Assembly (NCBI GenBank): GCA_038496445.1
Contig: JALMLS010000416.1
Span: 62,001-126,000, forward strand
From: Trichosphaerium sp. ATCC 40318
Lineage: Eukaryota > Protista > Tubulinea
Length of the DNA stretch: 64,000 bases
Direction: 5' to 3'
A program made the position numbers and the translations under genes. Below are positions 2,429-62,700 of the stretch, in pieces. Numbering within the stretch: the stretch's first letter is position 1; every line of letters begins with the position of its first letter. Below the pieces are notes generated by a model. It had not been told where the DNA came from and searched no databases. It saw nothing but the letters and a program-made list of their open reading frames with translations.

Positions 2429-5400
2429 ATGACAGAAGAAGTGGCGATAACTATGGACGCTGTATCTATGGTACCAGATGAGATATGGCTTATGATGTTC
2501 AATGTACGACAATAAACGCCCGTGGAATATTTTTCTAACGTTTGTGCGTTGTACAATTTTTCTAAACCTTCTAGGAGGTTCCTAAGAATAACTTACGCGC
2601 ATGCGCGCGTGTTTGCGTACGTTCTGTTAGGTTCTACAAAAAAAAAGTTAAGAAACTATTTAGTGGCAATGGTACCACGTCAGCCGTGATATTGGATGGT
2701 AAAATGACGTCCTCAACACAATTTTAAAGTTTCTAACACCTCCTAGGGCTCATTTCCATACAGGGCCAATTAGAAGCTGTAACGATAAATCCATGCTTTT
2801 TACAGCTAAAACTTGCATTGTGGAGAAAGTATCACGCCTCTATAGTGACACAATAAGTTATTGTGTTCAACAAACTACGGGGGAACATATTCTTGAAGTA
2901 ACTGATTGGACCACTAGTACATTGTCGTTTTCCCTGCTGGGAGCAATGTCAAAGATACCAAAACTTTTCAGTCATTCTTTTCGTCAGTCTTCTAGATATA
3001 ACACAGTAGACCTCATGCTCTATATAAATAGGAATGTGTACGTAATGATTTGGTTTTTTTTTTCTCACCCAACAAATTCCTTTTTGTATTTTTTTTTCAT
3101 TTAGTCCACAACTGATATACGTAAATTTGCACTAATGTTAAACTCTGTATTATTGTGATCGTTTGATTACTCGTTTGAATTAAAAAAATCAGACACGTGC
3201 CTCTTGAGTTTGCTTTTTTTCTACCAACCTGACTTTTTTGGTTGCCAATTTAGATTGGAAAGTATGATTTACAATGGAGAGTTAATACCAGATTATCTTT
3301 GTGACATACTTGACACATGCATAAGAGATGATTTAGAAACTCATCTGGCACGTAGATATGTTGTAGAGTACAAGGACTCGTACCTGCCTATGGTAATTTT
3401 TTATTATTATTTTACGATTGTCTAAAAAACAGTGGTAACAGTGTTTAGGTGGTTTCCAGTACTGTAGAGCAGCCAATTGGGTTGAAATTAAAATTGTATA
3501 AGTACCAGTACGATGCCCTTACATGGATGACACGTGTTGAAGAGAACTTGGATAAAGGTATTGCCTTAAAACTGATTTCGTTTTAGCTCATCTTAATTTC
3601 ATACAGAATTCTCGTATAGTACTCTTGCCCATTGGTCTAGGATTCGATTAAATGCACTGTATGACCTTCAAAAGAAAATGTTTGTTCCCTCTGATGGACC
3701 TGTAGAAAAACCGCTCAAAGCGTCATTTAAAGGTACCATTATGTACAAAAATTTTAAGCTGACATGCCACTCAGGTGGTGTTCTCGCTGATGAAGTTGGT
3801 CTCGGCAAAACAATAGAAGGTTTGTATTGTCCATTTATTTACCAGAAACTAATGCTGTTCTCTACTAGTATTGGCATTAATACTATCCAAGCCAGCACCT
3901 AAATTTAAGGAGCCTGCTTTTGAATTAGAAGACAAAACTCTGGAGCCTCTTTGGAAGACGAAAGCTACACTTATTATAACACCTAGCCACCTGTCCAAAC
4001 AATGGTTTGAAGAATTTACAAATCACGTCAAAGAAGAACATGCGTTGAATATCGTACTTGTAACAACAACTAAACAGTACAATGATTACACCCACCAAGA
4101 TATTCTAGATGCTGGTACGAGAAAAAAAACTTGAAGTTTTAACTTTAGTTTTCAGTTCAAAACCATTTCGTTGTAACACCCACAAAGGTTCCGATACACA
4201 TTCTTCTACTTTTCCATGAAATACAATTGTTATTGTTTTTGCTGTAAAGGAGAATTTGCTATTTGAACTTCGTTGAATTGAAGCAAATTGTTTATTCTTT
4301 ATTTTTTCTTCTTCTCTTTTTTACTTACTGTATTACTTGTTCCGCAGACGTTGTCATTGTATCTTATCCTATGTTACGTAACCCTAATTACATAAATATT
4401 GGCATGGAGAGTATTGAAACTTGCATTGAAAACAATACGCAGTTTGTAAAAAGACGTGCCAAGATGCTGACTAAAAGTCAACGTATTGAAAGACCAAGAC
4501 TATTAAGCAACATGAGAAAGGTAAGAGAATAGACGACCTCTCTTCCTATTAAACTAGAGTCAACAACAAAACTTCTTTTCAGTCTCACGTGATTCATTAA
4601 GGAAGCGAATGCTCGTGATGATCGAGGTGAATGGTTCCCTTTTGTGTTGAATAACTATTACTGGCATCGTATTGTACTTGATGAAGGACATGAAGTCCTT
4701 TGTGAGAAACAAAGCCATTTCTACCCTGAAGAACTAACTTCATTGGAATCAAGAACAAGATGGGTAGTAAGTGGAACACCCTTTCCAAACTGGTACGTTT
4801 ATAAAAAAACCATTTTTTCTTTTTTTGGGCTTGTTGGATTCTTACTGGTTTCATGCACTTAGGCTGACTGTTAGCGGTATTATGAGATTTTTAAGAGTTA
4901 AATCTTCTGATCCGTGGTTTGAAACCTACTTGAATAAGGCAGGAACAGGGCTAGAAAAAGCTTATTCCAAGTTCGTCTATCTTTCAGAAAAAAAAAACTC
5001 TTTGTTCAACTTTGCTAACACTAGTATAGCTGGGTTGTTGCAGACTTACTCATATCTAATCTATACTGGTACGATTTATTACTTGCACCCCTTACCTCAC
5101 TACTCACGTGCAATTCTTTAGGCGTAATACAAAACAAACCATAGAAAGCGAACTGGATATTCCAGAGTACTCTGAGGTAGTGAACTTACTCACATTCCAT
5201 CCAATTGAGCGCCTATATTACTCAGAGCCAAGTACATCATTAGGTACTATAAATGTAAAACATATTTAACATCCCATTATTACTTTAACCCTTAACACGT
5301 GATAACAAACAACAATCTTATCTTTTATAATTTCACTTACATGTTCTTGTTTTTTCCAAGAATCTAAGCGAGAGATGTGCACTATGAATAGAGATGGAAT

Positions 5401-8876: not shown

Positions 8877-9775
8877 TAGTGGTTGAAAGTTAACGGCTCA
8901 GCTCTAAATGACTTTTCAAACAAAAACAACTCTATTTAACCGGCTAACCGACTCCAAATTGTTACAATAAAACACGTGTTTGGAAATTTATTTGTAGTTT
9001 ATGTAGACTAAGTACTTAGCATTACCTGCAGCACAAACTTGCAGTTCTAGAGATTTTGTACTCAGACTAGTACGTTTGCTTGTCATCACAATAGAACCAC
9101 AAGAAAATACTCTCTCAACTGTTGCGGAACTTGCTGGCATTCCTAAGTACACTCTAGCCAAAGCTGAAAGGAGAAAGTAAGAACGGTTGCCACGCCACCA
9201 TGTTAATGCACACTGTTTTAGGGCAAGTGCAGGCATCCGTCTGTATTGCTTCAGTTCTTTGGCAATCTAAGAAAAAAAGAAAATAAAACTTTTCGAAAAA
9301 AAAAAAGAATCCGAGGATCAAGAGCGGAAGCAACATGTTACTTGCCATTGATCTTTGTAGAACCCATCTCAGTAACAAATTGTCTAAGCACACTTGATCT
9401 TCATGCAATAGCGTAGGGTTTGCTTTGAATCCCATTGAGGTGAGCGATAGTTGTTTCAGCTGGGCTTTTGTTCCATCGTTTAAGCACAATTTACAAACTT
9501 GTAAATGCTTGCGAAGTGTATCAGTGCTGGAGTTGCGACTGAATGGTGCTTGACAATAGGCACAAGAAACCTTATCAGGCGAGTCTATCATGGTCAATAA
9601 ACAAAAACATCAGCAGTTCTTGTTAGTAGACGTTTTTTGGTTCCGCTACTTGGTGGTTCAGCCATTGAAATTGGTATTTAGAACGGAAACGATTTAAGTC
9701 AATTAAGTCATTTATTTTTTTCGTGACAGCCAAATGACTAAGCCGGTTAAATAAGCCGTTTACCAACAACCACTA
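8877..9775 (-). mobile_element. Non-autonomous, internally deleted hAT DNA transposon (899 bp)
   Basis: Imperfect TIRs TAGTGGTTGaaaGTtAACGGCT and TAGTGGTTGttgGTaAACGGCT; perfect 8-bp TSD TCTTAGTT (8869-8876 and 9776-9783); BED finger (CAYC...LRKHL), LDPR relic and hAT dimerisation domain (WW...LARVYLGMPASSATVERVFS); no catalytic core. Confidence 0.92.
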
Positions 9776-10000: not shown

Positions 10001-10632
10001 ATGAACACTCTTCTAAGCTTACTAATTGCATTAATTGTAACCTTGTGTTTGGTTCTACCAGCGGAGTAAGTTGTTTTTTCCGATATTTTCAGAAATGCAT
10101 TTCTAGAGCACTTTGTATCACTTTCTCGCTTGATTACTAACCCTGTACTAGATCAAAGTTCAGAAGCAGAGGCAGTAGGTTTGGTTCTACAATCTATAGG
10201 CCAAAACCTCGTTTCGATGACTATGACGAAGATACCGACATGGCTTTCAATGGCAACGGTGCTGGTATGACGAGAAGAGGTGAACAAACTGTTGCTTTCA
10301 ATGGCAATGGCGCTGGTATGACAAGAAGAGGCGAACAAACTGTCGCTTTCAATGGTAATGGCGCTGGTATGACCAGAAGAGGCGAACAAACTGTTGCACG
10401 CCAACCAAAGTTCGATTTCGGTTTTGATAGACTCCCAAGAACCACTCGTACTGCCCACAACTGGCCTGGAATGAACGAGAGAAAAGATTTCTGGGACATA
10501 AACAGCCCTGCAAAGTACCTCAACCGATACAGCTCTCGCAGAACAAACCGCGCTCGCGTTGCTCACAACTGGCCTGGAATGAATGAGAGACAAGATTTCT
10601 GGGACAAAAACAGACCTGCTAAGTACCTTTAG
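10001..10632 (+). CDS. Secreted multi-repeat peptide precursor, 181 aa (exons 10001-10065 and 10152-10632)
   Basis: Exon 1 MNTLLSLLIALIVTLCLVLPA is a signal peptide. Intron GTAAGT...TACTAAC...CTAG joins in frame to the 10240 ORF. Contains 3x AFNGNGAGMTRRGEQTV and 2x AHNWPGMNERxDFWDxNxPAKYL; AATAAA shortly after the stop. Confidence 0.85.
10243..10395 (+). repeat. Three tandem 51-bp coding repeats (AFNGNGAGMTRRGEQTV)
   Basis: Direct repeats differing only at 6 synonymous third-codon positions. Confidence 0.95.
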
Positions 10633-11170
10633 AGTATACTGAGTAATAAAGTGAAATCACTTCCTTTTCACAGGCCGTCTTTTTTTTTGAGAGTAAAAAC
10701 GAGCGCTTGTCGTTCCATTTCAATTTGGTTGTGTACTGTGAATGTGATTCACAACAAACACGTTGTGGGATTTCCCTAAAAGACTTTTTAACGTTTCTAA
10801 TTGAGAAATTCTTGAGGGTGTTGTTCCGGTTATATAACCCGAACACATCATACACGAGGTTCTACTCTGTGCGCCCCTTTCAAAGAAGAGCTTTACAGTA
10901 GCTATGAATCAAGTAGTGCTCTCCTAATTCTCAGGCTTTACGCACAATACGCTTGCCCCACAACGTCCTCGATGTTTTTAGATTATTTTGGCGTATAGAC
11001 ACTTCGCGTTTGGTGAGAAATACGTTTCTTTTAATCACTTTTTGGCTTGAATGAACTTGAAAAAAATCATGTTTATTGATTGCTGTGTACAAAGTAAAGA
11101 GTACTAAAGAATTTGCTTTAGAAAAGTTTAAAATCGCGCTTATCATCAGCACATGTTGATCCTTTTGAAA

Positions 11171-14100
11171 TTACATTTCTGCTGCAATTACAGCATCGAC
11201 ACCGTGAACCATGAGCTAACAAAAAAGTGAGTTGTGAGTTGATAAAAAAACACACAAAGACAGAAAGAATTTAAAAAACTGTTCTCATCAAGCCAGCGAT
11301 TGTTTTGTTTCAGCTATAAAAAAGCGTACAGTTGGAGGTAAGTCCTTAGATAGTGCATCCAATTCTTGTATAAAATGATCTGCATCTGTATCAGTAACAT
11401 CAACTGGGTTCCTAAGAAAAAAAATCACCAAAAGCAAAGCATGAAAAGAATCTATGTTCGTTCTCATAGTAATAGCTTGGAGCAAAATAATACAACATGA
11501 CATACCTTGGCATTGGAACAAATAGTACAGCTAGTAAATAAATAAGTTAGGCTGGTTAACGTGTAAAAGTACTTTCATGAAAGTCATGGATTTTCAGTTT
11601 ATCTGCCGGTGACAAGAAAAAAAAAAAAGAAAATTCGTTTTTACCTGTATCTCTAGAATGCTGTTTTATCACTTGGTTTACCAAACATTGCTTATCTAAT
11701 TCGCTTATACCATCTAATGAATCATCAAGTATTTTTTCTTCAAGAGAAACACCTTTAGAATCACTTTCATCTTTACTTTGAATTTCATCATATAAAGCAG
11801 TCTCAGATAAAGCGAACACCTAAAACACGTGCAAAAACGATAAATATCACGTGATTTTTCCAATAAAAAACCCTAGAAACGTACATCATATCTAGCGCCT
11901 ACACGTGTTCTATAAAGGAAAGTTTTTAGAGCATCTTTTGTGTCCTTGACATCTTTTTCTTTTTCAACCAAACCGATTATTCTCAAATGAGTATTCTTCT
12001 TCCAAACATCTAAAAAACAAAAAACTTATCAAAAAAAATTCTCTGAACAAAAAACAAGTTTTATGACTTTTCTGGCTTCCTTACCGCTTGATGTTGATAA
12101 GATATAACCTAACTGTAATGCCAATAAAGCAGTTGGCTTCTCTTCATCAATGTAACCTTGGTACATAGGGACCCAGATATCGATACTCATCAACACTCTT
12201 TTTTTGAATGAGGTCACCATTTTACGAACAAGATTAGGTGAGTTCTCAACAGCGAATCCCAATATCATTCCCTTACTATGTTTATCAAAGCTAATAACTG
12301 TTATTCCCAATACTACAAATAGTTGTTAAATCACTCTTAATACGCGTACTTGCGTGCCAAGAGCAAATTTCTTTCCATCTCAATAACGTTTCTTAGGATA
12401 TCCAAGTAAACAGTAACATCCATACGGATAGGAGAATTTAACGTTGTTGAAGCGTAGATTCTTTGAATCTGTTCTCTGCATCTCTTGAACCCTTTAGGGG
12501 TACTAGCAGCACTCATATCATCCCTTCACAAATAACGTCAGTGAGGAAAACAATTGAAGCCTGAAGCGGAAAAAAAAGTGTTTGTTGTTATCTTCAACTT
12601 ACATTGGTAGTATGTGCTCTTCTGTGTTGTTACCACCAGCATTTCTGGAGCTCTTTTTACGCCTAAATTTCTTCGCCAATTCAGGAGTGACAGATCCAAA
12701 ATCAGTTGTTTTTCCTTGAAATGAGTTGAAGGCAATTAACACAGTATTTGGCTTCATTCCTCCAATACCAGCTGTCTATTTAAAAAAAATTAACTTCAAT
12801 GTATTGCAACAATCTTTCTACCATAATAAGATTAGCTGCGCCCAAGTCATACTTCTCGCTGCACACTACCTCAGCAAAAGCCTTCAAGTGAGATTCTAAA
12901 AGTATATTTTTTAGAGAACGATTGAGGTGTAGGCACATTTGATATCATACCTCTTGTGAATGCTTCTAGTTTTTGTTGATGTTCTTTCCATTCGCGTTTA
13001 TCAACACGTGGGTCACCAGCGTATACTGTACCGATGATATAAAGTCCTCCTTTTTTGAGATTATTGCCAAAATCGATCAGACTAAGACTCCCAGGTATGT
13101 CTTGTATTAACAATAATAAAGATGGTCTCCAATTCTAATCGAAAAAAATTTAGACATCTCACTTGGTTGTAACTTTCTGGGGTTTTCCTAAAGACGTACT
13201 TTGACATGTTGCTTTGAATCAAGCCTTAGTAGATACTTTCTTACTTGATGAAACATAACAGCTGAATAATATCACGTGATTAATAATAGGAACAAGATAA
13301 AAATAATGAAAAAACAATGGCTTGAGTATTATAGCAAGTACCTTGTGTAATATCACCCCATTGTTTTTCACTTGCTTTAAAGTACAAGAATCCAAATAGA
13401 AGAATAAACAATATAATAGATACACCAGCGTAAATAGGATTCAAATAGAACATAAACGCTATACAAGCAACAGCAGCAATCAACGCTTAAAAACAAATAT
13501 AAGTCATAACAAAAAGAGATTGATATTCGCCAAAGAAAAACGTCATTGTAAATGTTTCTAATAATATATAGAAACATGTGATTGATGTCTAGCATACGTA
13601 CATGACCACCAAGTGAAGTACTTGAAAGTAGGACGGAAATTTGGAGCACCAGAGATTGATAACATGAAACAAGCAAAGTTTGTCATACCGTATGTCAAAA
13701 AGTAAAACATTGTAACAAACGGTAGAACGGCGTTGAGGTTACCAATTAAACAAACAGCCTATGTAAAAGATTAATGAAGGAGAAGGTATGAGAGAAAAAG
13801 GTAAAAGAAAGATACAATAAGGCCAAAAACAACAAAACAACAAAGGAGGAAGATGAAGAAGGTAAACGTTCTTACAAGTATCAGTAATGCAGTAACAAGA
13901 ACAGCTCTTCTTGGTTCATCTCCTTTTTTTGATCCTTTAGCGAAAAATCCCAGAGGTAATAGTTCATCACGTGCAAGAGCTTGAAGTATACGTGCTCCAC
14001 CTTGGAAAATAAAAATTAAACAAAAAAACAACAAAAGACAACTTGGGACAAGGTCTATACAGTGAGTCCGTAGAACTATGAAAAAGCACGTGAGATATAC

Positions 14101-16119
14101 CTAAAATTGATCCGAGTGCAGAAGATAATGTAGCCATCCACACTCCTTGAATTACAGGCCATTTGTTGTATGCAAGTGTCTTTTTGTTGAAAAAAGTTAG
14201 AAAGAAATTACTCCTGGCATACTGGGATTTTTGACGTAACTGCAAATGCAAAGTAATCATGTTTTAGGGTATCCCTTGTTGTTGTGAAACCCAAAGCTAT
14301 AACTATTCAAAGAAAAGTAAGTCACAAACAGCTTCTAAGAGCGAGATTTTAAGACGTTTTTCAGGTTAAAAAATTCACTGAACTTACCTAGAATAGAGTA
14401 AACTATAAGCGCAGTGAATACTGCTAGAAGTGTTCCAGATGGTATTGAACGACCAGGATCTATGTTTTAGTCAATATAATACAGTGTAAAGGAACTTTAG
14501 AACCTCGTAAATCTCCCGACATATTAGCACCTTGTTATTGGATTAGCATTCAAATATTTATTAATCTCTATGCTGTACCTGCCATGATTCCCGTTACAGA
14601 AGGAAAAAATATGGAAAACACAACATTGAATGAGTATGAAGGTCCATAAGAAGAAAGAATGTTCCTGAATGAAAGAATCAGTTCTCAAAGAAACTCAACA
14701 AAATAGGAGCAAAAAAAACACGTTGTAAAATCTGACTGCCTTATAAATACGAATGGGTTAATCGTAGCCAAATGGCAAGATTATTTTTGATATCACCATT
14801 ATCGCTTTACCAAATATAGGCGGATATCCTGCGTGCACGTTTTGTTAAGAGAAATATTTTGACGTACGACTTAAACGTTGTGAAATCCCATCCTACATAA
14901 GTCGAGTTTCCTGTATAGTCTGTCGGATCTGGACTCAATGCAGGTTTGCTGAACATATGCCTATTCGTTGCGAGACTAACACTTACTGTGCCAATGGCTA
15001 CAAGAAGGCAAAGGAATATCACAATAAAAGTTTTTGCGAAGACATCTTTAAAAAAAAAGGTTAAAATAAGGTCTCAAAGTCAAAGTATCCATACCTGCTC
15101 CAAGGAAAGAGATACCAGTTAATAATACTAACGCTGCCAATGCATATGCGATAACTTCCCAGTGACCTTGTGGAATCTTTTCCGACGCTGCCTACAAGTC
15201 CAAAAATTAAGAAGAATACTTTTGGAAAAACTTTTGCGGTTTTAGTGAAAAACACATACAGCAAGCGCCGCAGCGAACCCTAACAGATACGTCGCCCCTC
15301 CTACAACATTTGCTAGATAGAATACAATACCAATACTACCACCAAACTCTATAAAACAAATATAAACAACTGGGAACTCAAAGTTCTTTTTTTTCCAAAA
15401 TTGAAAAAAAAAATCACGTGCCTGGTCCTAAACATCTACTAATCATATCTTTTTCGTTACGTTAAAGAAAACAAAATCACTCTGGCGTCGTTTTCAGCAA
15501 AAAAAAAAAAAGGGAAAAGTAGGTGGAGGATACAATAAGCTCCACCGCCTTTTATCTCTCCATTTGTGGCAATAGCAGAAAGAGAGAGTGTTGTTAATGT
15601 CACTACAGTAAATGCCATAAAAAACATAACAAATGTTTGAACTATTCCTGCCTACGCTCTATCTTAGCTTCAAGAAGTCATATATATGTGTTACCTGTCC
15701 AACCATCCACGACAAACGTTCAAATAGTACAACACCAAATATACTCAATATACAAGGTACATAGACGCCCTGAAACAATAGAGGTTAAAATTAATCTTCA
15801 AATTACAAAAAAAAAATGGTTTCTGAAAAACATTTCACTTATCACGTGCCATGAATGTTCCCAAGGCATTCTTTGTTTGTTTAACTGGCTCAATGGCTAT
15901 ATTATCATCTCCTTTATTATCATCCAATAAAGGTACCGTAGAATCGCCATCGTCGTACTGAACTGACATGTTTGGCTCGTAAAATGGAGTATTCTCGTTG
16001 TTTACACTTGCGTTTGGTGGTTGGGCCATTATGTATGATGTAGAACTAGTACTTGTTGTATCTACTGTCTCTAGTACATTGCTCAACTCACGAACACTTT
16101 CTTTGTTGTTTTTGTGCAT
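11171..16119 (-). CDS. Cation-chloride cotransporter (SLC12 family, SLC12A9/CIP1-like), multi-exon
   Basis: [100 protein letters not shown]; ends VHGVDAVIAAEM*. Confidence 0.92.
15449..15533 (-). other. U12-type (minor spliceosome) GT-AG intron
   Basis: 5' site T|GTATCCTC, branch point TTCTTTAAC about 13 nt from the 3' end, no polypyrimidine tract; splicing restores [10 protein letters not shown]. Confidence 0.8.
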
Positions 16120-31864: not shown

Positions 31865-32903
31865 CTAAGGGTTAAAAATAGATAAACAATGTACACCAGA
31901 AAGAACTTTTTTGCCATCAATGATGCCGTTCATAAATTTAAGATGAACAGTGTGCACACCAGAAAGTGCCTTGATGCCCTCATCTGTAATCCTGTCACAA
32001 CATACAAGGTCAATAGAATGAACACCTGAAAGCATTTTAATACCTTCATCAGTAATGCCTTCACAACCACAAATACTAATCGTGTGAACATCACCAGCAA
32101 TTGCCCTAATACCCTCATCTGTAAACTTGCAACACATAAGGTCTAAAGTGTGGACACCTGAAATTGCTTTGAGAGCTTCATCTGTAATATTTTGACAATT
32201 ATTGAAATAAACAGTGTGAACTCCTGATAGTGCTCTGATTCCTTCATCCGTTACATGGTCACATTCCTTCAAGGTAATACTATGCACTCCAGCAAGCGCC
32301 TTGATACCCTCATCAGTTATAAGTTTGCACCCAGAAAGGTCTATGGTATGAACACCTGACAGCACTTTGAGACTTTCGTCTGTTATAAGTTCACACCATC
32401 CAAGGCATATAGTATGAACACCAGCAAGCGCTTTGATTCCTTCATCTGTAACACTGTCACAACAGCTAAGAGCAATTGTATGAACTCCTGCAAGTGCTTT
32501 GATATCCTCATCTGTAATGCGATCACTTTGAAGGGTAATAGTGTGAACACCAGCAAATTCTTTGACAATATCAGAGGAGAATCTAGCAATATTGATCTTT
32601 GTTTGCTTAAGAGTGCTGGCGTGTTTTAAGAGTGCCTTTGCTTGTGCGATGGTCGAAATAACAACACTTTCGTATCCGATAATGTCGTGAATGATTGATG
32701 CAAAATGATGACAAGATTGACAAGCCGCAAATCTTGATTTTGTTGTTTGCTTCAAAATTAGAGCTAATATCTCTGTAGGTAGTTCTAGAATGCCTGGTTG
32801 TCTCCTTTTTGATATTAGAACAACAAAATAGACAAACGAAACAGATAATTTTATTTTAGTGTATGTACCTTTGATTTACGGTTACTAGGCGTTTTTTTGA
32901 CAT
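31865..32903 (-). CDS. F-box + leucine-rich repeat protein (one 5' intron)
   Basis: MSKKRLVTVNQR|RQPGILELPTEILALILK F-box; about 8-9 copies of a 25-aa repeat EGIKALAGVHTIxLxxCxxITD. Confidence 0.85.
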
Positions 32904-47895: not shown

Positions 47896-50130
47896 TTAGT
47901 GTTCACACAAAGAAAAAGATCTTTCCCATTTTTCGTTTTCTGAGTTTACGTGATATTTACGTTCATCCATCAATGCCAATCTATGACCGCAAGCGTCTTC
48001 CCAAGTCATTCCAGACTGTGCATAGCTAACAATCATCTGTATCAGCTCAGGAGGAATTTTTTTACCTACAAACGTTTCAGCTATTGAATAAGCAAAATGT
48101 TAAATAAGAGTTCTGACCTAGTCTGTTGAATACAAGCATGAGAGTAAATGTAAGTCTTCTTGATCTCACGCCCCACTGTTGCTCGGGTACTTCTTTTGTT
48201 GATAGTATTGGTACATCTGGGTTGACAATAAAGAAACAAAGAATTTTTCTGGATTGCATCATATTTGAGATGTTGTGAAGCGATACAACTTGGTGCTGTA
48301 AATCGTTTGGAAACACAATCAACCTTCCTAATAGTTCTTAGTTGTTAATACAGCATATAAACGACAAAAACCCTTGAATGTGTGGCCGACAACACGTGTT
48401 TTGTTATAAAAGAAGATTCAAAAAAGAACATATGCAAGTCTTTTTTTCAAATACCGTGGTTTGTTTCTACAGATCCAAGGATTTTATGGTTTGTCCACTC
48501 GCGTCCTCCATCTGGTTCATCAGGTGCTGGAAACTTGTCAAAAACATCCCCTCTTTCATCATCCTCACGCCAACGTCTGAAACAAAGACCAGAATCATTA
48601 ATTCCTATGTAGCTGAGTAAGTAACAAAAAAGGTATGGACAAAAATAACCATCTTACCTGGAGCAACAGAGTAGTAGAATATTGCTGATGCTACGATTTG
48701 TTCATGAAACATACCCTCAACATGCCTTTTTCTTTGTCAAAAAAAAAAAAACAAAGGAAAAAAGTTCTGAGAAATAAAATGGTCGAAGTTCAGTCAACTC
48801 TCCACCACCCAGTCCGTGAAAACAAACAATGATAAATGAGTATTGAGTGAAATCAAGGAATTGGTAAAGATTTGAAACAACGGCTTAAAAAACCTACCAT
48901 GAGCCTTGATATACCTACAAAAATACTTGTCAGCACATGTCAATGTTGAAGGCAAACGCACATCTCCTGGTTTAAGTGTGTAGTTTGCTGCTTTTACTAT
49001 CACTTGAACATTTCTTCCTGTTAATTCATACTCTGGAACATGAGGCACAACTTTATCGAATACTTGCTCAAGTGTTTTGTAAAATGGCTCATTTGTGTAT
49101 CTATCAACATTGTTGACATATCCTTCTATTGAACTTTTACCGTTTTTATCTATGTTAAAATTCGTAGGTAGCCATTGGTACTTTGATGTATCTTGCTGCT
49201 TTTTCTCTTTTGAATGGTGAAAGTAACTAATAGGTAAATTAGATAATGCAACCTATACAACCAAAACAATGTATCCAACAAAACAAAATCTAACAACTTT
49301 CATAAAAATCAAGTTTTTCGTTTTGAACCTTATGATCCTCAACGCAGAACAAATGGTCCCTCAGTGCAGAACGTAATGATTAAAATTAATTGATTTTTTA
49401 ATATGAAATAGAGTTCGATGAAGTCGCTCAGCTACATTTGTAGTGGCATACGAGAATAAAAGACTTTGAAGTAAAACAATAACAACAGGAAAAATATTTC
49501 ATCGTACTTATATTCCTCAGGGTCTTCGTATTCTCTTTTTGGGCGCTCTCCAAATCTCTTCAAATCCAATAGCTTCTTATCAGTTCCAGGTAATACCTCA
49601 GAAATACCGGCAATGTAAGGAAACATAGAAGGATGAATGATATCCTGAACCATCTCATTTGTGTTTGGATGAAAGTCAGGTTTACCTTTAAAAAGCACGA
49701 TTAGTATTTGCTTGAACGGTCATCTTGTAGTTAACAAAAAAATCTTAGGAAAAAGGCCTTTACCTGTCTGCGCAAGCTCATCTAATTGCGACTCGACCTT
49801 TGCTCTTAGATCTTCTGGTATCAAATCATCTGATACAAATACTCTTTCATTGTGTAATTGTTGAGGTGTCACAAAATGGGATTGGTTGATTTCTTGGACT
49901 AGTTCCTCGAAAGCTTGTAAAAGGATGTTTGTTTTGACTCCTTGAGCAGCTAGTTCGTCAAAGTAGCGACTACGAATCTCATAATCCAACATCTTTGTTC
50001 TCCAAAGCAATTTTTGTTGTATTACCTTTTTAACAGCGTCTATGCTGTTGAGATCAGTTTTTGGGCGTTTCGCGTCTTGTTCATAGCTATCATCAGTGTC
50101 AGCACTACGTTTACGCTTAGGAGGCATCAT
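47896..50130 (-). CDS. DUF4246-family (2OG-Fe(II)-oxygenase-like) protein, copy 1
   Basis: PDFHPNTNEMVQDIIHPSMFP, KYQWLPTNF, QVIVKAANYTL, 17-nt exon 48898-48914 (VYQGSW) then HVEGM..EQIVAS, GRLIVFPNDLQHQV, RKILCFFIVNP; ends FSLCEH*. Confidence 0.82.
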
Positions 50131-51442
50131 ATAGTTATATAGGCGTAGTGGAGCGGGTGGGCGCGTGTTAAAATAACTTGTAAGAATACCCTAAAGAAAG
50201 TTCCAGTGAATGTCTTGAAAAATCACAAAAATCACGTGCTTGCTACTAATCGGAAGTTACCCATTGAAAGTAGCTTGATGCTCCATTTAAATGGCAGCAA
50301 ACAAAAATCTCGCGTGGTGAGTTTTGATCACAAAGTACACAAAAACGACTCAGTGAAAAGTAAACGAGGGTAATGTCAGCTCACCGTGCTTATTAAAGCT
50401 AGCAATTAGAAAGTTTCGCTCCTTGTTAGTACTACCACAATGTGACTATTGCTTGATAATGTTGGCCTTCGTGTATTGGCGATAACAAATTTTTCAATGT
50501 CAGATCACCACCATTTTCTTGGCAGGAAATATCGCAATATTAGGCACTGTACTAGGTAAGTTCAAGCCATAGAAGTCTTCAATGAGCTAAAATCGAATTA
50601 ACAAAGCTGTTGAAATACCACCAAACACTGTATGAATCCTCAACCACAAGCGCTGATTAGTAGCTTATGAAAACTCATTGGATGTAACACAGGATAAATA
50701 GGAGTAGTATGTGAAAGTTATGCTATTATGTGCATAAGTTATAGGTCAATACATTACATCTCGGACTCTCACGGATCCCGCTGATGATGAGTAATATGAA
50801 TGCCTGTTTGTTTCTGAAGAAATTTTGGTTAGTGTTAGATCCCTATCATTCATTGGCTCCTACAAACAACATCAAATGAAGAAGAACCTATCTCTAGGCT
50901 TGAACGCTTGGTCGCGAAGCCTGAGACCCTTTGTTTTATTACAAGTTGCAGACACAACAAAACAATCACCGAAAAACCAAAGACTTTTCCGAGTACACAA
51001 TTGCCGTTGTTACACCTTCCAGGTTGTTGAATTTACACGTAAGTCGCAAACCTCCCTTAGTCTCAAACGGCCATAAAAACTGGTTTGTACAGCCGCAACA
51101 ATATTTTACTAGATCTTTGCTGGCGCAACAACCTGTACAGGCAATACCATTGTCAAATAATCAAAAAGATTACTTTTCTTGCTGATTCTCTCAATATTTT
51201 GTTTTTAATCACATGTGATAACATGTTGTACACAATTATTAACCTAGCGTTGGTGCGCCTTTAGCAGTACTCTTTTATCCGACTCGCCAGTTGGCAGATC
51301 AAGTTATGAATCACTCGGCGAGCTACTCTAAGTATCTCAAAAATAAATTTTGTTGGTAGCCCTCTGATAGTATGTCAGCAGATAGCCAACGAGGAATCTA
51401 AAATGTAAGGTTTATTTGGACAATACAGGAAGTTCACAGTAT

Positions 51443-51952: not shown

Positions 51953-52516
51953 GTTTCTACTGTCTTGTTTTGTTTTGTACTAATCTATCTATTTAAGGCA
52001 TAGGAGGTGCGAATTCGTTGTATTCCGTGTGACTAGAATGGACAAAAGGTACGAATTCATATTGTGTGTCACGTCAGGGTTCCATCTCACTCCTGGCAGA
52101 GTGTGCTAACCCCTTATGGCATTAATGGTTTCTAAATGCTACGATTATGTTGCGATACTTCCGCTTTCCGCACAATCCTCCGCATACGCTATGATTCGTC
52201 ATAAATCACAACCTTGGTTCTCTGAAGACGGCTAACGCTAGAGCTAAAAGCAGTATCGTACGTTTAGATTGTGCCTTCAGCTCAAAAAGAGTTTGAAAAA
52301 TAAATACAGTTTGTAGCACTAGTAAATATTAAAAACAAACAAAGTCATAAAATAGCATTCATCTCGGATCCCGTTTCTTCATGTTACAAGTAGTTGTAAG
52401 GTTTAATATTAAGACTGGTGACATAGAAATACAGCACATTCCAGCCTCACTTTTTTAGAAAGTGATAGTACAATTGGTGACAAACAATATTCAAAAACAG
52501 CTATTTTATTGTTATC

Positions 52517-54799
52517 TTAGTGTTCACACAAAGAAAAAGATCTCTCCCATTTCTGGTTTTCTGAGTTTACGTGATATTTGCGTTCATCCATCAATGCCAA
52601 TCTATGACCACAAGCTTCGTCCCAAGTCATTCCAGACTGCGCATAGCTAACGATCATCTGTATCAGCTCAGGAGGAATTTGTTTACCTACAAACGTTTCA
52701 GTTCAAAAAGGGACGGTTAAAGTTCTGACCTAGTCTGTTGAATACAAGCATGAGAGTAAATGTAAGTCTTCTTGATCTTACGCCCCATTGTTGCTCGGGC
52801 ACTTCTTTTGTTGATAGTATTGGTACATCTGGGTTGACAATAAAGAAACAAAGAATTTTTCTGGATTGCATCATGTTTGAGATGTTGTGAAGGGATACAA
52901 CTTGGTGCTGTAAATCGTTTGGGAACACAATCAACCTTCCTAATAGTTCTTAGTTGTTAACGCAGTATATAATCGACAAAAAACCTTGAAATGTGTGGCC
53001 GACAAGTTTTGGTATAAAAGAAGATTCAAAAAAAGAACAAATGCAAGTGTTTTTTCAAATACCGTGGTTTGTTTCTACAGATCCAAGGATTACGTTGTTT
53101 GTCCACTCGCGTCCTCCATCTTCTCCATCAGGTGCTGGATAATTACCTTCAACATCTCCTCTTTCATCACCCTCACGCCAACGTCTGAAGCAAAGACCAG
53201 AATCATTAATTCCTATGTAGCTGGGTAAGTAACAAAAAAGGTATAGACAAAAATAACCATCTTACCTGGAGCAACAGAGTAGTAGAATATTGCTGATGCT
53301 ACGATTTGTTCATGAAACATACCCTCAACATGCCTTTTTCTTTGTCAAAAAAAAAAAAAGGAAAAAAGTTCTGAGAAATAAAATGGTCGAAGTTCAGTCT
53401 GCCTGCGAGTAGATTGCTTGCAAATTAACGAATATGATGATAATAAATGAGTGTTGTGCGAAATCAAGGAATTGGTAAAGATTTGAAGCAACATTTAAAA
53501 AACCTACCATGAGCCTTGATACACCTAAAAAAATACTTATCAGCACATGTCAATGTTGAAGGCAAACGCACATCTCCTGGTTTAAGTGTGTAGTTTGCTG
53601 CTTTTACTATCACTTGAACATTTCTTCCTGTTAATTCGTACTCTGGAACATGAGGCACAACTTTATCAAATACTTGCTCAAGTGTTTTGTAAAATGGCTC
53701 ATTTGTGTATCTATCGACATTGTTGACATATCCTTCAATTGAACTTTTACCATTTTTATCTACTTTAAAATTCGTAGGTAGCCATTGGTACTTTGATGTA
53801 TCTTGCTGCTTTTTATTTCTTGAATGGTAGTAACTAATAGTAAATTAGACAACGTAAAGACAACAAAGACTTCAAAAAAAAAGGAAAAAAAATAAAACTA
53901 GTTTTTTGTGTGGTAACAAATGATCCCCGCAGTGCTCCTCGGGGCAGACGTAATGATTAAAATTAATGGTTTTATATGAAACAGAGTTAGATAAAGCCAA
54001 TCAGTTATATTACATTTGAAGTGACATACGAAAATAAGACTTTTAAGTCAAATGCAAAATCAACAGAAAAAAAACCGATAAACCAGTCGTACTAATTGGT
54101 TTCTTCGTATGGTCTTTTTGGGCGCTCTCCAAATCTCTTCAAATCCAATAGCTTCTTATCAGTCTCAGGTAATACCTCAGAAATACCGGCAATGTAAGGA
54201 AACATAGAAGGATGAATGATATCCTGAACCATCTCATTTGTGTTTGGATGAAAGTCAGGTTTACCTTGTAAAACACGATTAGTATTTGCTTGAAACCAAA
54301 GCTAGTAGTCAACAAAAATAGCTTGCATTCTTTCACAACAAAGTCTACAATGGCACATAGCAAATCAAGTGTTCGAAGACATAAGAAAGTCATTGTTAAG
54401 CCGAAAAAAAAAACTTTTGAAGGAAAACGGGTTACCTGTCTGTGCAAGCTCATCTAATTGCGATTCGACCTTTGCTCTTAGATCTTCTGGTATCAGATCA
54501 TCTGATACAAATACTCGCTCGTAGCGTAATTGTTGAGGCGTCACAAAATGGGATTGGTTGATTTCTTGGACCAGTTCCTCGAAAGCTTGTAAAAGGATGT
54601 TTGATTTGACTCCTTGAGCAGCTAGTTCGTCAAAGTAACGACCACGAATCTCATAATCCAACACCTTTGTTCTCCAAAGCAATTTTTGTTGTATTACCTT
54701 TTTAACAGCGTCTACGCTGTTGAGATCCGTTTTTGGGCGTTTCGCGTCTTGTTTAGAGCTATCATCTGTTTCAGCACTACGTTTACGCTTAGGAGGCAT
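52517..54799 (-). CDS. DUF4246-family protein, copy 2 (tandem paralogue)
   Basis: Exons nearly identical to 47896-50130, same intron positions, ends FSLCEH*. Confidence 0.82.
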
Positions 54800-55306
54800 T
54801 GTATAGTTAATCAGCGTGGTGGAGCGGGTGTGGGCGCTTGTTAAAATAACTTGTAACATACCTTAACGAACTCAAGTACTGAGGGGTTGTCATCATGGTG
54901 GAGTGTAGGATTACTGTAACCAACGTTACGGTTTAGCGTCTTACTAGAAATCGTTTTCTTGGCAACTTGCAAAAACCGTTGTGGAAGTGGACGTTTTAAC
55001 TCTTTCCAACGTGAGTGGAAGCCAGTAGTCTGTTTTGTAACTGTAGTGGACAACCTTGTAAGGCAACAAGAGCGCCTGAACAAAGAGATTTGTCCAAACT
55101 GGTGCGACAGAAACGACTTCAGTTTTTCGACTTTTGAAAACAAATGTAACATCACGGTTGTACTTAAAACTAAATAATTATACAAGTGCTTTGTTTTTAG
55201 AACATTGTAGCAGGTTCATTCACAGGATCTTGAGTTCGACATCATTTTTTTTCGTGGCACGTGTTTGTTTTTTGAAATTTTTTTCTCTTTGTCAAGCTGT
55301 TTCGTT

Positions 55307-59285: not shown

Positions 59286-59722
59286 AGTTGTCAAGATGCT
59301 GATTTAATAAACAAACTGTCCAAATTATGCCATTTTCTCGTCGAATTTTTTAATTTGTTGTATCAGAAAAACCGTCAAAAAATTAACAGAAAACTCGTGT
59401 TTTTTTGGAATACTCACGATTTCTTTTAAACGTGCGTTCTATGTAAGAGGTTATTAAATCACGTAGAGGTTGTAATAGTTTTTTTCTGGCTATATATGAG
59501 CAATTAAGTTACATCTACAGATTGGAGTAAGTGTTTGTGTTTTGAGCTATTTGTCCGCTTTATCAATATACATTTATTGTCTTACATAGAAAATAATTTA
59601 AAGACGGTCTCAAAGGGGCTGATATTAACACATATAGTATGTTTTCAATGTCAGAAATTTATTTGTTACAATGCGAAACAAGGCCAAAAATAAAAAACCA
59701 GGGTTCAGAAAAAAAAAGTTAT

Positions 59723-62700
59723 TTACAGATTATCACTACCACCATTTAAATTATGGGTTAGTAGTTTCAAAATATGTTCAAAAGATGGTCTCTCATCAGG
59801 ATCAAATGACCAACATTCAAGTAATATATCATATAACCAAGCAGGAGTACGTGAAGGTATTACAGGGTGATACCCTTCATCACGAATTTTCTTTAAAGTA
59901 GCCAACATATCTTGTGCATTAGCATGTGGCTCTATACCAGCCTATTGAAGAATATCAGTTAGTGACTGACATACTCTTTTAATAATTCGATTTACCAGTA
60001 GTTCATATGCGACACACCCAAACATCCATGTATCTGATGCAACAGAGTACACACGTGAAAGAGATTCTGGAGCCATCCAACTGAAAGTTTGTTTTAGCCT
60101 AACTATGAAAAAAGTTTTTTTTTACGCTTACCGTACTGGCCCTACATTGGCTTTTGTCATGCCTTTACCTGATTTTACTGTTCTAGAAAATCCAAAGTCT
60201 GATACTTTAGGTATCAGTGTATTATTGGTCTGTTGTAAGAGTATATTTCTACAAGCCAAATCCCTAGCCAGATTAGCTTTTTTTTTGGAAGAATTCTAGC
60301 TTTGTTGCAACACGCCTATGAATGATTTTCTCCTTGTGTATATGTAAAACACCCCGTGCTATACCTATTAACATAGATACACACATTTCTATACTTATAC
60401 GTGGTCTTGAAAATGCTATAGCATCAAGAGAACCTCCAGAAAGGTACCTTAAGATAAAGTTAACTTGGCTGTATTTCTTTTGTCTAAAATTAAACCGTAC
60501 TCCATAACAAAACAAGTCATAGTATCATCGAGTACAATACCATAAAGTTGAACTACATTTGGATGCGGTCTCAGTTGATTCATTACACTAATTTCTGATA
60601 TAAAGTCAGAAAGTAATTCTTGCTGTACTTCCAATCCTGTTTTTACAGCAACGTCAATCGCTCTCCATTTCCTGTTTTAGAAATAAGTTTAAAACATTCA
60701 CAATAATATTTTAATAATTTTACCCTTTATGAACAACGCCATAGGTACCTCTACCTAACTCGTTACCTATCGATACTTCACTTGAGTCTATTTTCCATTT
60801 TTTCAAAGCAGCATTTCCGAAATCTTTTTCATACTTTGCACAAACGTTATGAATAGCCTCTTCTTTTGTTGTGAGGGCTGTGTTATCATATAAAGTAGAG
60901 TCTAAAAAGTAAAGAGTAAATCAATTATTATCTGTCTGTGAGTGCCAAGCTCTTAAGTTTTTTGGTGTACCATTTTCCGACTTCCTAATTTTAAACACAA
61001 CAAATACAGTAATTATGGCTATAATTATTATCACAGCTATTGTTACACCAACTAATATTGGTACTATATTAAGAGATTTTCCTTTTTGATTATCTGAAGT
61101 CTCTTCTGTTGGTGGTACAGGTGGGAGAATATCCACTAAGAAAAAAATGAGAATATGTATTCCCAAAAGAAAAACATACATTGCCATTGTTGGACAAACG
61201 GTTTCGCATCAAAAGTCAGGAATTGATTAGTAAAAGTAACCCAAAGAGAGTTTCTATCTTCAATGAGAATACTTCCGGCCACTATGAAAAAGTGAGCAAT
61301 CATTGAAAATATACAAGGTGCAAATAAAAGAATATTATTCTCCTTACTTCCAACAGCGAATATGCCTCCATCAGTGATAGTTTTGGATACATATAACAGT
61401 GATGTATCATTTATGCCTTTTATAACCAAGTATAAAGGTTCATAGGCACGTGCTGTAAGGCCTCCAAAAGAGTATCCAAGTACGCACATATCGCCAGCAG
61501 GAAGCACAGAATAAGGGCCAAAACCATGGATGTATAAGTTCCCTATAATAATATCTACAAGCTCTATATTATAATTCTCTGTTACTTCTGCAATACTGTA
61601 GTTAAGCATATGTATTGTGACTAGAAAAGAGCGTTAGCACATACAATCGTAGGCTAGTTTTTTGGTTTTTTGTAATTGTTTTTTTGAAAAAATTACCTTT
61701 AACAGATGTGGGTAAGACTTCGTCAAGTACCTGATTTGTTTGTATCAGAGGATTTGTCAAACCTACGTATAAATAATTAGTATGTAATAATGATGAATTT
61801 TACGTACTAACTACGAGTTGTTGTTTGTTTTCGGTGTGCGTAAAAAAGAAATGAGATATGTATTTATGAGCTAACCAGTCTCCTTTTGTGTTATTTAATG
61901 GGTTCAAAACTTCTCCAATATCATTAAAAGATATATCCAAAGTTTTAATAAATAATTGATCGCCTTCAAGCCAAGCCATAACAAGATTTTCTCCATTCAA
62001 TACAATCTTTGGGCATTTTATTGAAGAATTTCTTGGAATTATTCTTTCATTCGTAATCCGATCAAAGTCAATGGTACGCAGGTGAAGTATTGTATCATTT
62101 TCATAATCTACGTTGACTATAACACATGTTGTATTATCTCCGAATACTTCAAAGTCCATCAACTGAGCATACGCGAAATCTGAAGTCGGCCTGTAAAAAA
62201 CCAGAATTAAAAAAAACCCTTCACAACTTGCTCGTTTGTTTAAACTGAGCTAACTTTGACTCACTTACCACTTTGAGGTAGAAAAGAGTGCAGTCTGATT
62301 ATATGTTCCTCGTGGTATATCTAAGTCTATTGCATATACTTGTTGTCTAGGGTCAGGCTGGCTCGGTGATTTTTCATGAAAAACATGCAAGCAATGAACC
62401 GTGTCAATAGAAGTGAATGTGCAATACAACAGCCTTTCTGTTCCAGTCTCAGCAAACCTAGAACTATTTGTGATCATAGGGTCATAGTACGATACATTTC
62501 CCATGGGCCTAACAAGAATTTAACGGCTGTTAAGCTAAGCGAAGCGGAAACTAAGTTTTTTCGAGTTGTTGGCTTACCAGCAATCGCCTAATGTAGTAAG
62601 CTTGTTATTATCGTCCATGCGCTGTATACTAAGGCATGACGGAGCTGTACTGAGCTCGTTTTTGATTTCAATGATGCTCAGAAAATAATATTTTCCGTCT

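Follow-up and report, generated by a model that had tools for sequence, protein, structure and literature searches.

Does a short, repeat-bearing locus of the amoeba Trichosphaerium sp. ATCC 40318 encode a secreted precursor from which several peptides are cut, and what would such peptides do? The locus lies in a 64,000-nucleotide stretch of contig JALMLS010000416.1 (hereafter the window). A sequence-only reading had proposed a secreted multi-copy peptide precursor with two repeat types, and this layout is supported by the signal exon, the repeats and the silent-biased substitutions described below.

A gene of two exons encoding a small exported protein

Positions 10001-10632 form a genuine two-exon gene encoding a small exported protein. 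Joining 10001-10065 to 10152-10632 results in a protein of 181 amino acids with its stop codon at 10630-10632. The features of the locus are:

8991-9609, minus strand: disrupted remnant of a hAT transposase, with the BED finger in one frame and the dimerisation domain in another
10001-10065, plus strand: exon 1, ATG and signal peptide (residues 1-21 and two bases of codon 22; from sequence and hydropathy)
10066-10151, plus strand: 86-nt GT-AG intron, phase 2 (GTAAGT donor at 10066, TACTAAC branch at 10135-10141, TAG acceptor ending at 10151)
10152-10632, plus strand: exon 2, coding part through the stop (open frame, raised GC, contig of run X1)
10156-10245, plus strand: pro-region, with a basic part (residues 24-42, net +7) and an acidic part (43-53, net -6), ending in Met-Ala (from sequence)
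10243-10398, plus strand: type A tandem array of three 17-residue units (repeat detection: 3.0 copies x 51 nt over 10243-10397)
10399-10455, plus strand: spacer, residues 105-123, with R-x-x-R-Thr-Ala ahead of the first B copy (from sequence)
10456-10524, plus strand: type B copy 1 (B1), His-started, 22 residues plus Asn, net charge 0 (from sequence)
10525-10563, plus strand: Arg-rich linker holding the fourth Arg-Arg and terminating in Arg-Val-Ala (from sequence)
10564-10629, plus strand: type B copy 2 (B2), 22 residues, its end coinciding with the stop codon (from sequence)
10645-10650, plus strand: AATAAA, likely a polyadenylation signal

What the sequence-only reading had said about the spliced order (signal peptide, pro-region, three A units, spacer, two B copies) is correct throughout, the junction itself being predicted. 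The signal peptide was called by hydropathy, not by SignalP: an 11-residue peak of 3.29 lies at residues 8-18, and the remainder does not exceed 0.33. Cleavage is predicted after Ala-Glu-Ser (residue 23) by the -3/-1 rule. Downstream of the signal peptide there is no cysteine and, by hydropathy, no membrane segment.

Both strands of the window together contain 50 branch-plus-acceptor sites, 23 of them with a strong donor, and an ATG-started, hydrophobic, in-frame upstream exon was found at a single one of the 50, the precursor's own. The GC content of exon 2 is 47%, compared to 35-40% in the flanks and the intron. With 36.7% GC and introns of 86 nt (precursor) and 114 nt (11216-11329, in the neighbouring transporter gene), the window is compatible with the published Trichosphaerium genome (GC 37.69%, mean intron 75 nt; PMC10521059). 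ORF-based annotation overlooks genes of this kind because the signal peptide sits on a separate small exon.

Expression was assessed on the contigs of three public runs (X1, X2 and X3) from one sample, X2 and X3 being the larger ones. X1 holds one 377-nt contig at 10243-10619, which matches with zero differences and lies entirely within exon 2. Since a random contig of this length would land inside the exon in only 6-8% of cases, the X1 contig is probably RNA. Run X2 is RNA, the intron of the transporter gene (11216-11329) being spliced there. RNA-seq had been proposed as a check on the gene model; the probable RNA contig of X1 covers part of exon 2, but the 10065/10152 junction is spanned by no contig in the three runs. 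The contigs of X2 and X3 do not cover the gene. Detection in just one run out of three may point to expression limited to certain cells or stages, although contigs cannot prove absence.

Constraint on the repeats and the grammar of cut sites

Within the type A array, the FNGNGAGMT element starts at 10246, 10297 and 10348 and is followed each time by Arg-Arg, which closes all three units, and then by GEQTVA. The units differ at six third-codon sites through at least seven substitutions, all of them synonymous, which bears out the earlier statement on the six sites; the chance of this outcome is 5e-5 to 7e-4, depending on the model and on whether sites or substitutions are counted. A recount likewise confirmed the reported identity of the type B copies (20/23), which are separated by four synonymous and three non-synonymous changes. 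Pooled over both families, 11 of 14 changes are silent against an expected silent share of 0.17-0.30 (p 6e-6 to 1e-4), and the sense protein is under purifying selection. As the GEQTV stretch is conserved to the same degree as FNGNGAGMT, selection does not single out a core inside type A. One antisense frame, sharing third positions, preserves the A repeat too; an antisense reading was rejected because of a stop in B2 and the lack of a signal peptide.

Arginine makes up 15% of the protein, so that basic sites are easy to find, and the mature chain carries a net charge of +13. The predicted repeated products are free of cysteine with net charges of -1 to +1, and the N-terminal 19-mer reaches +7. 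Predicted monoisotopic masses of the unmodified peptides are 1452.63 Da for the type A 15-mer, 867.35 for the type A 9-mer, 2831.32 for B1, 2801.32 for B2 and 983.39 for an N-terminal 8-mer of type B. AlphaFold, run on the single sequence without alignment, gave a pLDDT of 48 and no confident fold, which would fit a disordered precursor but is weak evidence for one. The similarity N-x-x-GM-x-x-R between A and B was dropped as evidence, its p of 0.04 being uncorrected and one of seven comparisons.

Cutting at KR and RR yields five fragments of 41, 17, 17, 54 and 29 residues. Three of these terminate in the type A motif, which covers 25% of the protein with the 15-mer counted or 15% with the 9-mer alone, by direct count in place of the FIMO step of the published rule. 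The rules for fungal Kex2-processed repeat proteins (KEPs; Le Marquer 2019, PMC6339444) require a signal peptide in a protein free of membrane segments, a minimum of four fragments from KR/RR cutting, and a motif that three or more fragments have in common and that covers at least 15% of the protein; judged on its sequence, the precursor passes them. Those of Umemura 2020 ask for at least three repeats of at least eight residues, each between dibasic sites. Here only the second and third A units have dibasic sites on both sides, the first being preceded by a single-Arg region.

The residues behind the four Arg-Arg sites are GE, GE, GE and TN, and a Ste13-type XA or XP directly after a dibasic site occurs at none of the four. 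This points to a 15-mer that includes GEQTVA, and not the 9-residue core, as the default type A product: two copies of GEQTVAFNGNGAGMT would be released together with one copy bearing an acidic N-terminal extension. The earlier comparison with Kex2/Ste13-processed precursors is therefore not borne out for type A: Kex2, Kex1 and Ste13 would not produce FNGNGAGMT, and a 9-mer would require an additional protease cutting after Val-Ala or Met-Ala. The Kex2/Ste13 idea fares better with type B. X-Ala follows Arg only ahead of this family, in the order single Arg, X, Ala, core, and before both copies Arg(-3) and Ala(-1) are retained via different codons while the middle residue has changed. Such a flank is what one would expect if a cut at the single Arg were followed by loss of one dipeptide, so that the peptide would begin with His. 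An X-Ala had been reported before every core and is indeed present at all five, but each repeat family accounts for a single independent event, giving two in all. Both places said to carry the P[RK]FD motif ahead of a family do have it, yet at chance level (p=0.27 vs shuffles), and it was rejected as a signal.

A monobasic-site rule is satisfied by 43% of the arginines vs 46% in shuffles and was also dropped. Type A ends in Met-Thr-Arg-Arg and type B in Tyr-Leu-Asn-Arg or Tyr-Leu-stop, the B homology finishing exactly where B2 reaches the stop codon; none of the repeats has an amidation Gly before a basic cut site or at its C-terminus. The spacer might release a possible third product, a Gln-started 9-mer flanked by single Arg. 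Two Arg-Gln sites (10399-10431, after residue 105, and 10588-10629, inside B2) could yield pyroglutamate-started sub-peptides; B1 carries Lys at the position corresponding to the Gln of the B2 site.

Enzymes for such processing had been proposed as a further check. The entries listed in the Trichosphaerium gene tables (PMC10521059 supplement) include at least two dipeptidyl peptidases, a carboxypeptidase A3-like gene, an S8/S53 peptidase and at least two glutaminyl cyclases; the dipeptidyl peptidases are thus listed, but a kexin is not among these entries. Acanthamoeba has three kexin-like genes (10.1101/802215).

Relatives and genomic surroundings

Database searches were run exon by exon, and the joined model was analysed locally only. 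A word-indexed protein search with exon 2 returned 625 candidates, none with E<=1, and the B region returned none. A HMMER search of 1.84 billion representatives produced three hits, each a repeat that matches by chance: jerboa USP29, which carries an inserted 17-residue repeat, and two NGDG-repeat proteins, one of them OmpA-family lipoprotein-like. A JGI metagenome locus (3626-3727) agrees with type A plus RR at 10 of 11 residues; it reads as a bacterial GH3-type glucosidase and was set aside as a chance match among 241 million records. Viral contigs, bacterial genomes, the ESM Atlas (twice), Pfam, NCBIfam and the PDB yielded no match. The precursor would accordingly stand without sequence kin in the databases searched, and the suggested search for paralogues and homologues found no second precursor within the 64-kb window and no relative in any database.

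The identified neighbours are an SNF2 helicase, the hAT remnant and an amino-acid-permease/SLC12-type transporter. A DUF3328 or other tailoring gene was not recognised among them, part of the window's exons having been scanned, and the suggestion of a RiPP-like system finds no tailoring enzyme there. The hAT remnant, whose end lies some 400 nt before the ATG of the precursor gene, could influence the promoter of that gene. The multi-exon transporter gene (about 11200-16100, minus strand) is convergent with the precursor. Further away, an ORF at 891-2042 on the plus strand combines an F-box-like with a Vint/Hint domain (Pfam Vint E 8e-12), and three relatives at ~40% identity were found for it. 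A single-exon leucine-rich-repeat protein with 22-residue units is encoded at 31865-32875 on the minus strand. A tandem duplication of ~4.6 kb (about 47900-50200 and 52500-54860, 94-97% identity) encloses a small gene that looks SnoaL-like by eye. The receptor-type tyrosine-kinase-like gene at about 59700-62500 (minus strand) encodes one membrane segment and an ectodomain.

Peptides, coat or defence

The explanation we put forward, at a little under an even chance, is a convertase-cut secretory polyprotein giving short, linear, essentially unmodified peptides that act extracellularly, with signalling from amoeba to amoeba as their most likely task. Signal peptidase would remove residues 1-23, a kexin/furin-type protease would cleave after Arg-Arg and some single Arg, and a carboxypeptidase would trim the basic ends. 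Type A would then give two copies of the 15-mer and a third peptide that differs at its N-terminus but has the same last ten residues; type B, cut after Arg and relieved of one X-Ala dipeptide, would give two His-started 22-23-mers. Processing into peptides appears likely from the sequence, and a signalling role, given processing, has a somewhat better than even chance. Signalling is the leading guess, since the repeated products would be small, carry almost no net charge and contain no cysteine; the last two properties would also set them apart from membrane-lytic antimicrobials. The peptide-precursor reading draws on a signal exon unique in the window, the absence of any domain, the 11/14 silent changes and the Arg-Arg closing the A units; against it count the lack of homologues in which conservation of the cut sites could be followed, the unseen junction and the Arg-rich chain.

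Conservation of the Asn/Gly-rich type A repeat over its entire 17 residues would also suit a structural or surface part, in which the whole or Arg-cut protein builds the cell coat (test), adhesive or amyloid-like fibres. Trichosphaerium has a membranous test (PMC10521059), a chain of net +13 could bind acidic coat polymers, and Kex2-cut Rep1 peptides forming fibres in Ustilago provide a precedent (PMC9769878). We nevertheless regard this role as unlikely, as the repeats are few (three and two), no paralogue occurs in the window and, of the three runs, only X1 has a contig of the gene; for a coat protein made constitutively and in bulk one would not expect it to be missing from the contigs of X2 and X3, even if contigs are no proof of absence. 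A precursor of several peptides for defence or feeding (antibacterial, antifungal or toxin-protective), cut by furin and dipeptidyl peptidase, is to our mind improbable as well. Its grammar of a furin site plus one dipeptide, with several product kinds per precursor, is that of Drosophila Baramicin and bee apidaecin (PMC9233930), amoebae produce multi-peptide antimicrobial precursors (naegleriapores, AplE/AplK; PMC11542183) and the N-terminal 19-mer is strongly cationic; the repeated products, however, lie between -1 and +1, lack cysteines and show no saposin-type likeness.

Much less credible is a RiPP precursor whose cores are cyclised, isomerised at Asn-Gly or cross-linked by enzymes encoded elsewhere: the multi-core layout resembles dikaritins, and the cores offer Asn-Gly pairs and Trp, Tyr and His, but the helicase, the transposase remnant and the transporter are what was identified nearby. 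The least probable of the readings considered is a recent or decaying lineage-specific ORF without function, or a mis-joined model. It could draw on the missing homologues, the unseen junction and the antisense frame that also keeps the A repeat, and it is opposed by the silent-biased substitutions, the perfect splice signals with the signal exon, the polyA signal, the raised GC and the defects of the antisense frame named above.

Known peptide signals of the Amoebozoa, such as SDF-2 and glorin, use other routes. Dictyostelium SDF-2 is, like the putative products here, a peptide from an amoeba precursor, but a single one cut from the housekeeping-type protein AcbA (PMC5055082). Naegleriapores and Dictyostelium AplE/AplK (PMC11542183) are likewise freed from amoeba precursors; they consist of folded six-Cys saposin domains, whereas the present protein has no Cys after the signal and no Pfam match. 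With fungal KEPs (PMC6339444, PMC7329392) it shares the signal peptide, three similar RR-separated fragments, repeats over more than 15% of the length with the 15-mer, and two motif types, as found in 77 of 1193 KEPs. It differs in its amoeba host, the absence of any sequence relationship and the presence of only two A copies between two dibasic sites; the single-Arg-flanked type B would escape KEP pipelines. The KEP class was defined on fungal hosts; the host here is not a fungus, the window containing a RhoGEF-RhoGAP gene besides the receptor tyrosine-kinase-like one.

In ascomycete alpha-factor precursors (Kex2, Kex1, Ste13; PMC5850478) a prepro-polyprotein likewise carries several copies of one peptide that have diverged at synonymous sites, but the amoeba precursor lacks an XA/XP run after a dibasic site and carries two peptide types; neither a mating role nor a receptor is known for it. 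Animal proneuropeptides and Chlamydomonas prepropeptides (PMC6313938, PMC9351486) resemble it in signal, basic cut sites, multiple similar copies and the absence of a folded domain; unlike in these, the amoeba repeats have no Gly-basic amidation site, and there is no homology. The insect defence precursors of Baramicin A, apidaecin and Drosocin (PMC9233930) yield several product kinds, and their furin-type site with single dipeptide trimming resembles type B; again there is no homology, and the amoeba products are near neutral. By its sequence, the precursor would represent a familiar KEP- or prohormone-like design in an unexpected lineage, outside the fungal class and failing the Ste13, amidation and dikaritin tests.

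In the literature searched, mostly without subscription journals, we found no description of a short linear multi-core precursor from Amoebozoa. The origin of short-repeat prepropeptides cut at basic sites has been placed at the base of the opisthokonts (PMC6339444). Hormone- or pheromone-style signalling in an amoebozoan, with one convertase-cut precursor that releases linear peptides of two kinds and is restricted to certain cells or stages, is a tentative proposal that we hold to be possible. If the peptides are made, they would be cheap and defined candidates (15-23 residues) for cell-cell signals, and the unexplained life cycle and cell contacts of this amoeba provide a setting for them. 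If the proposal is true, the multi-copy prepropeptide design would extend beyond the opisthokonts, and would either go back to an ancestor shared by amoebae, fungi and animals or have arisen independently.
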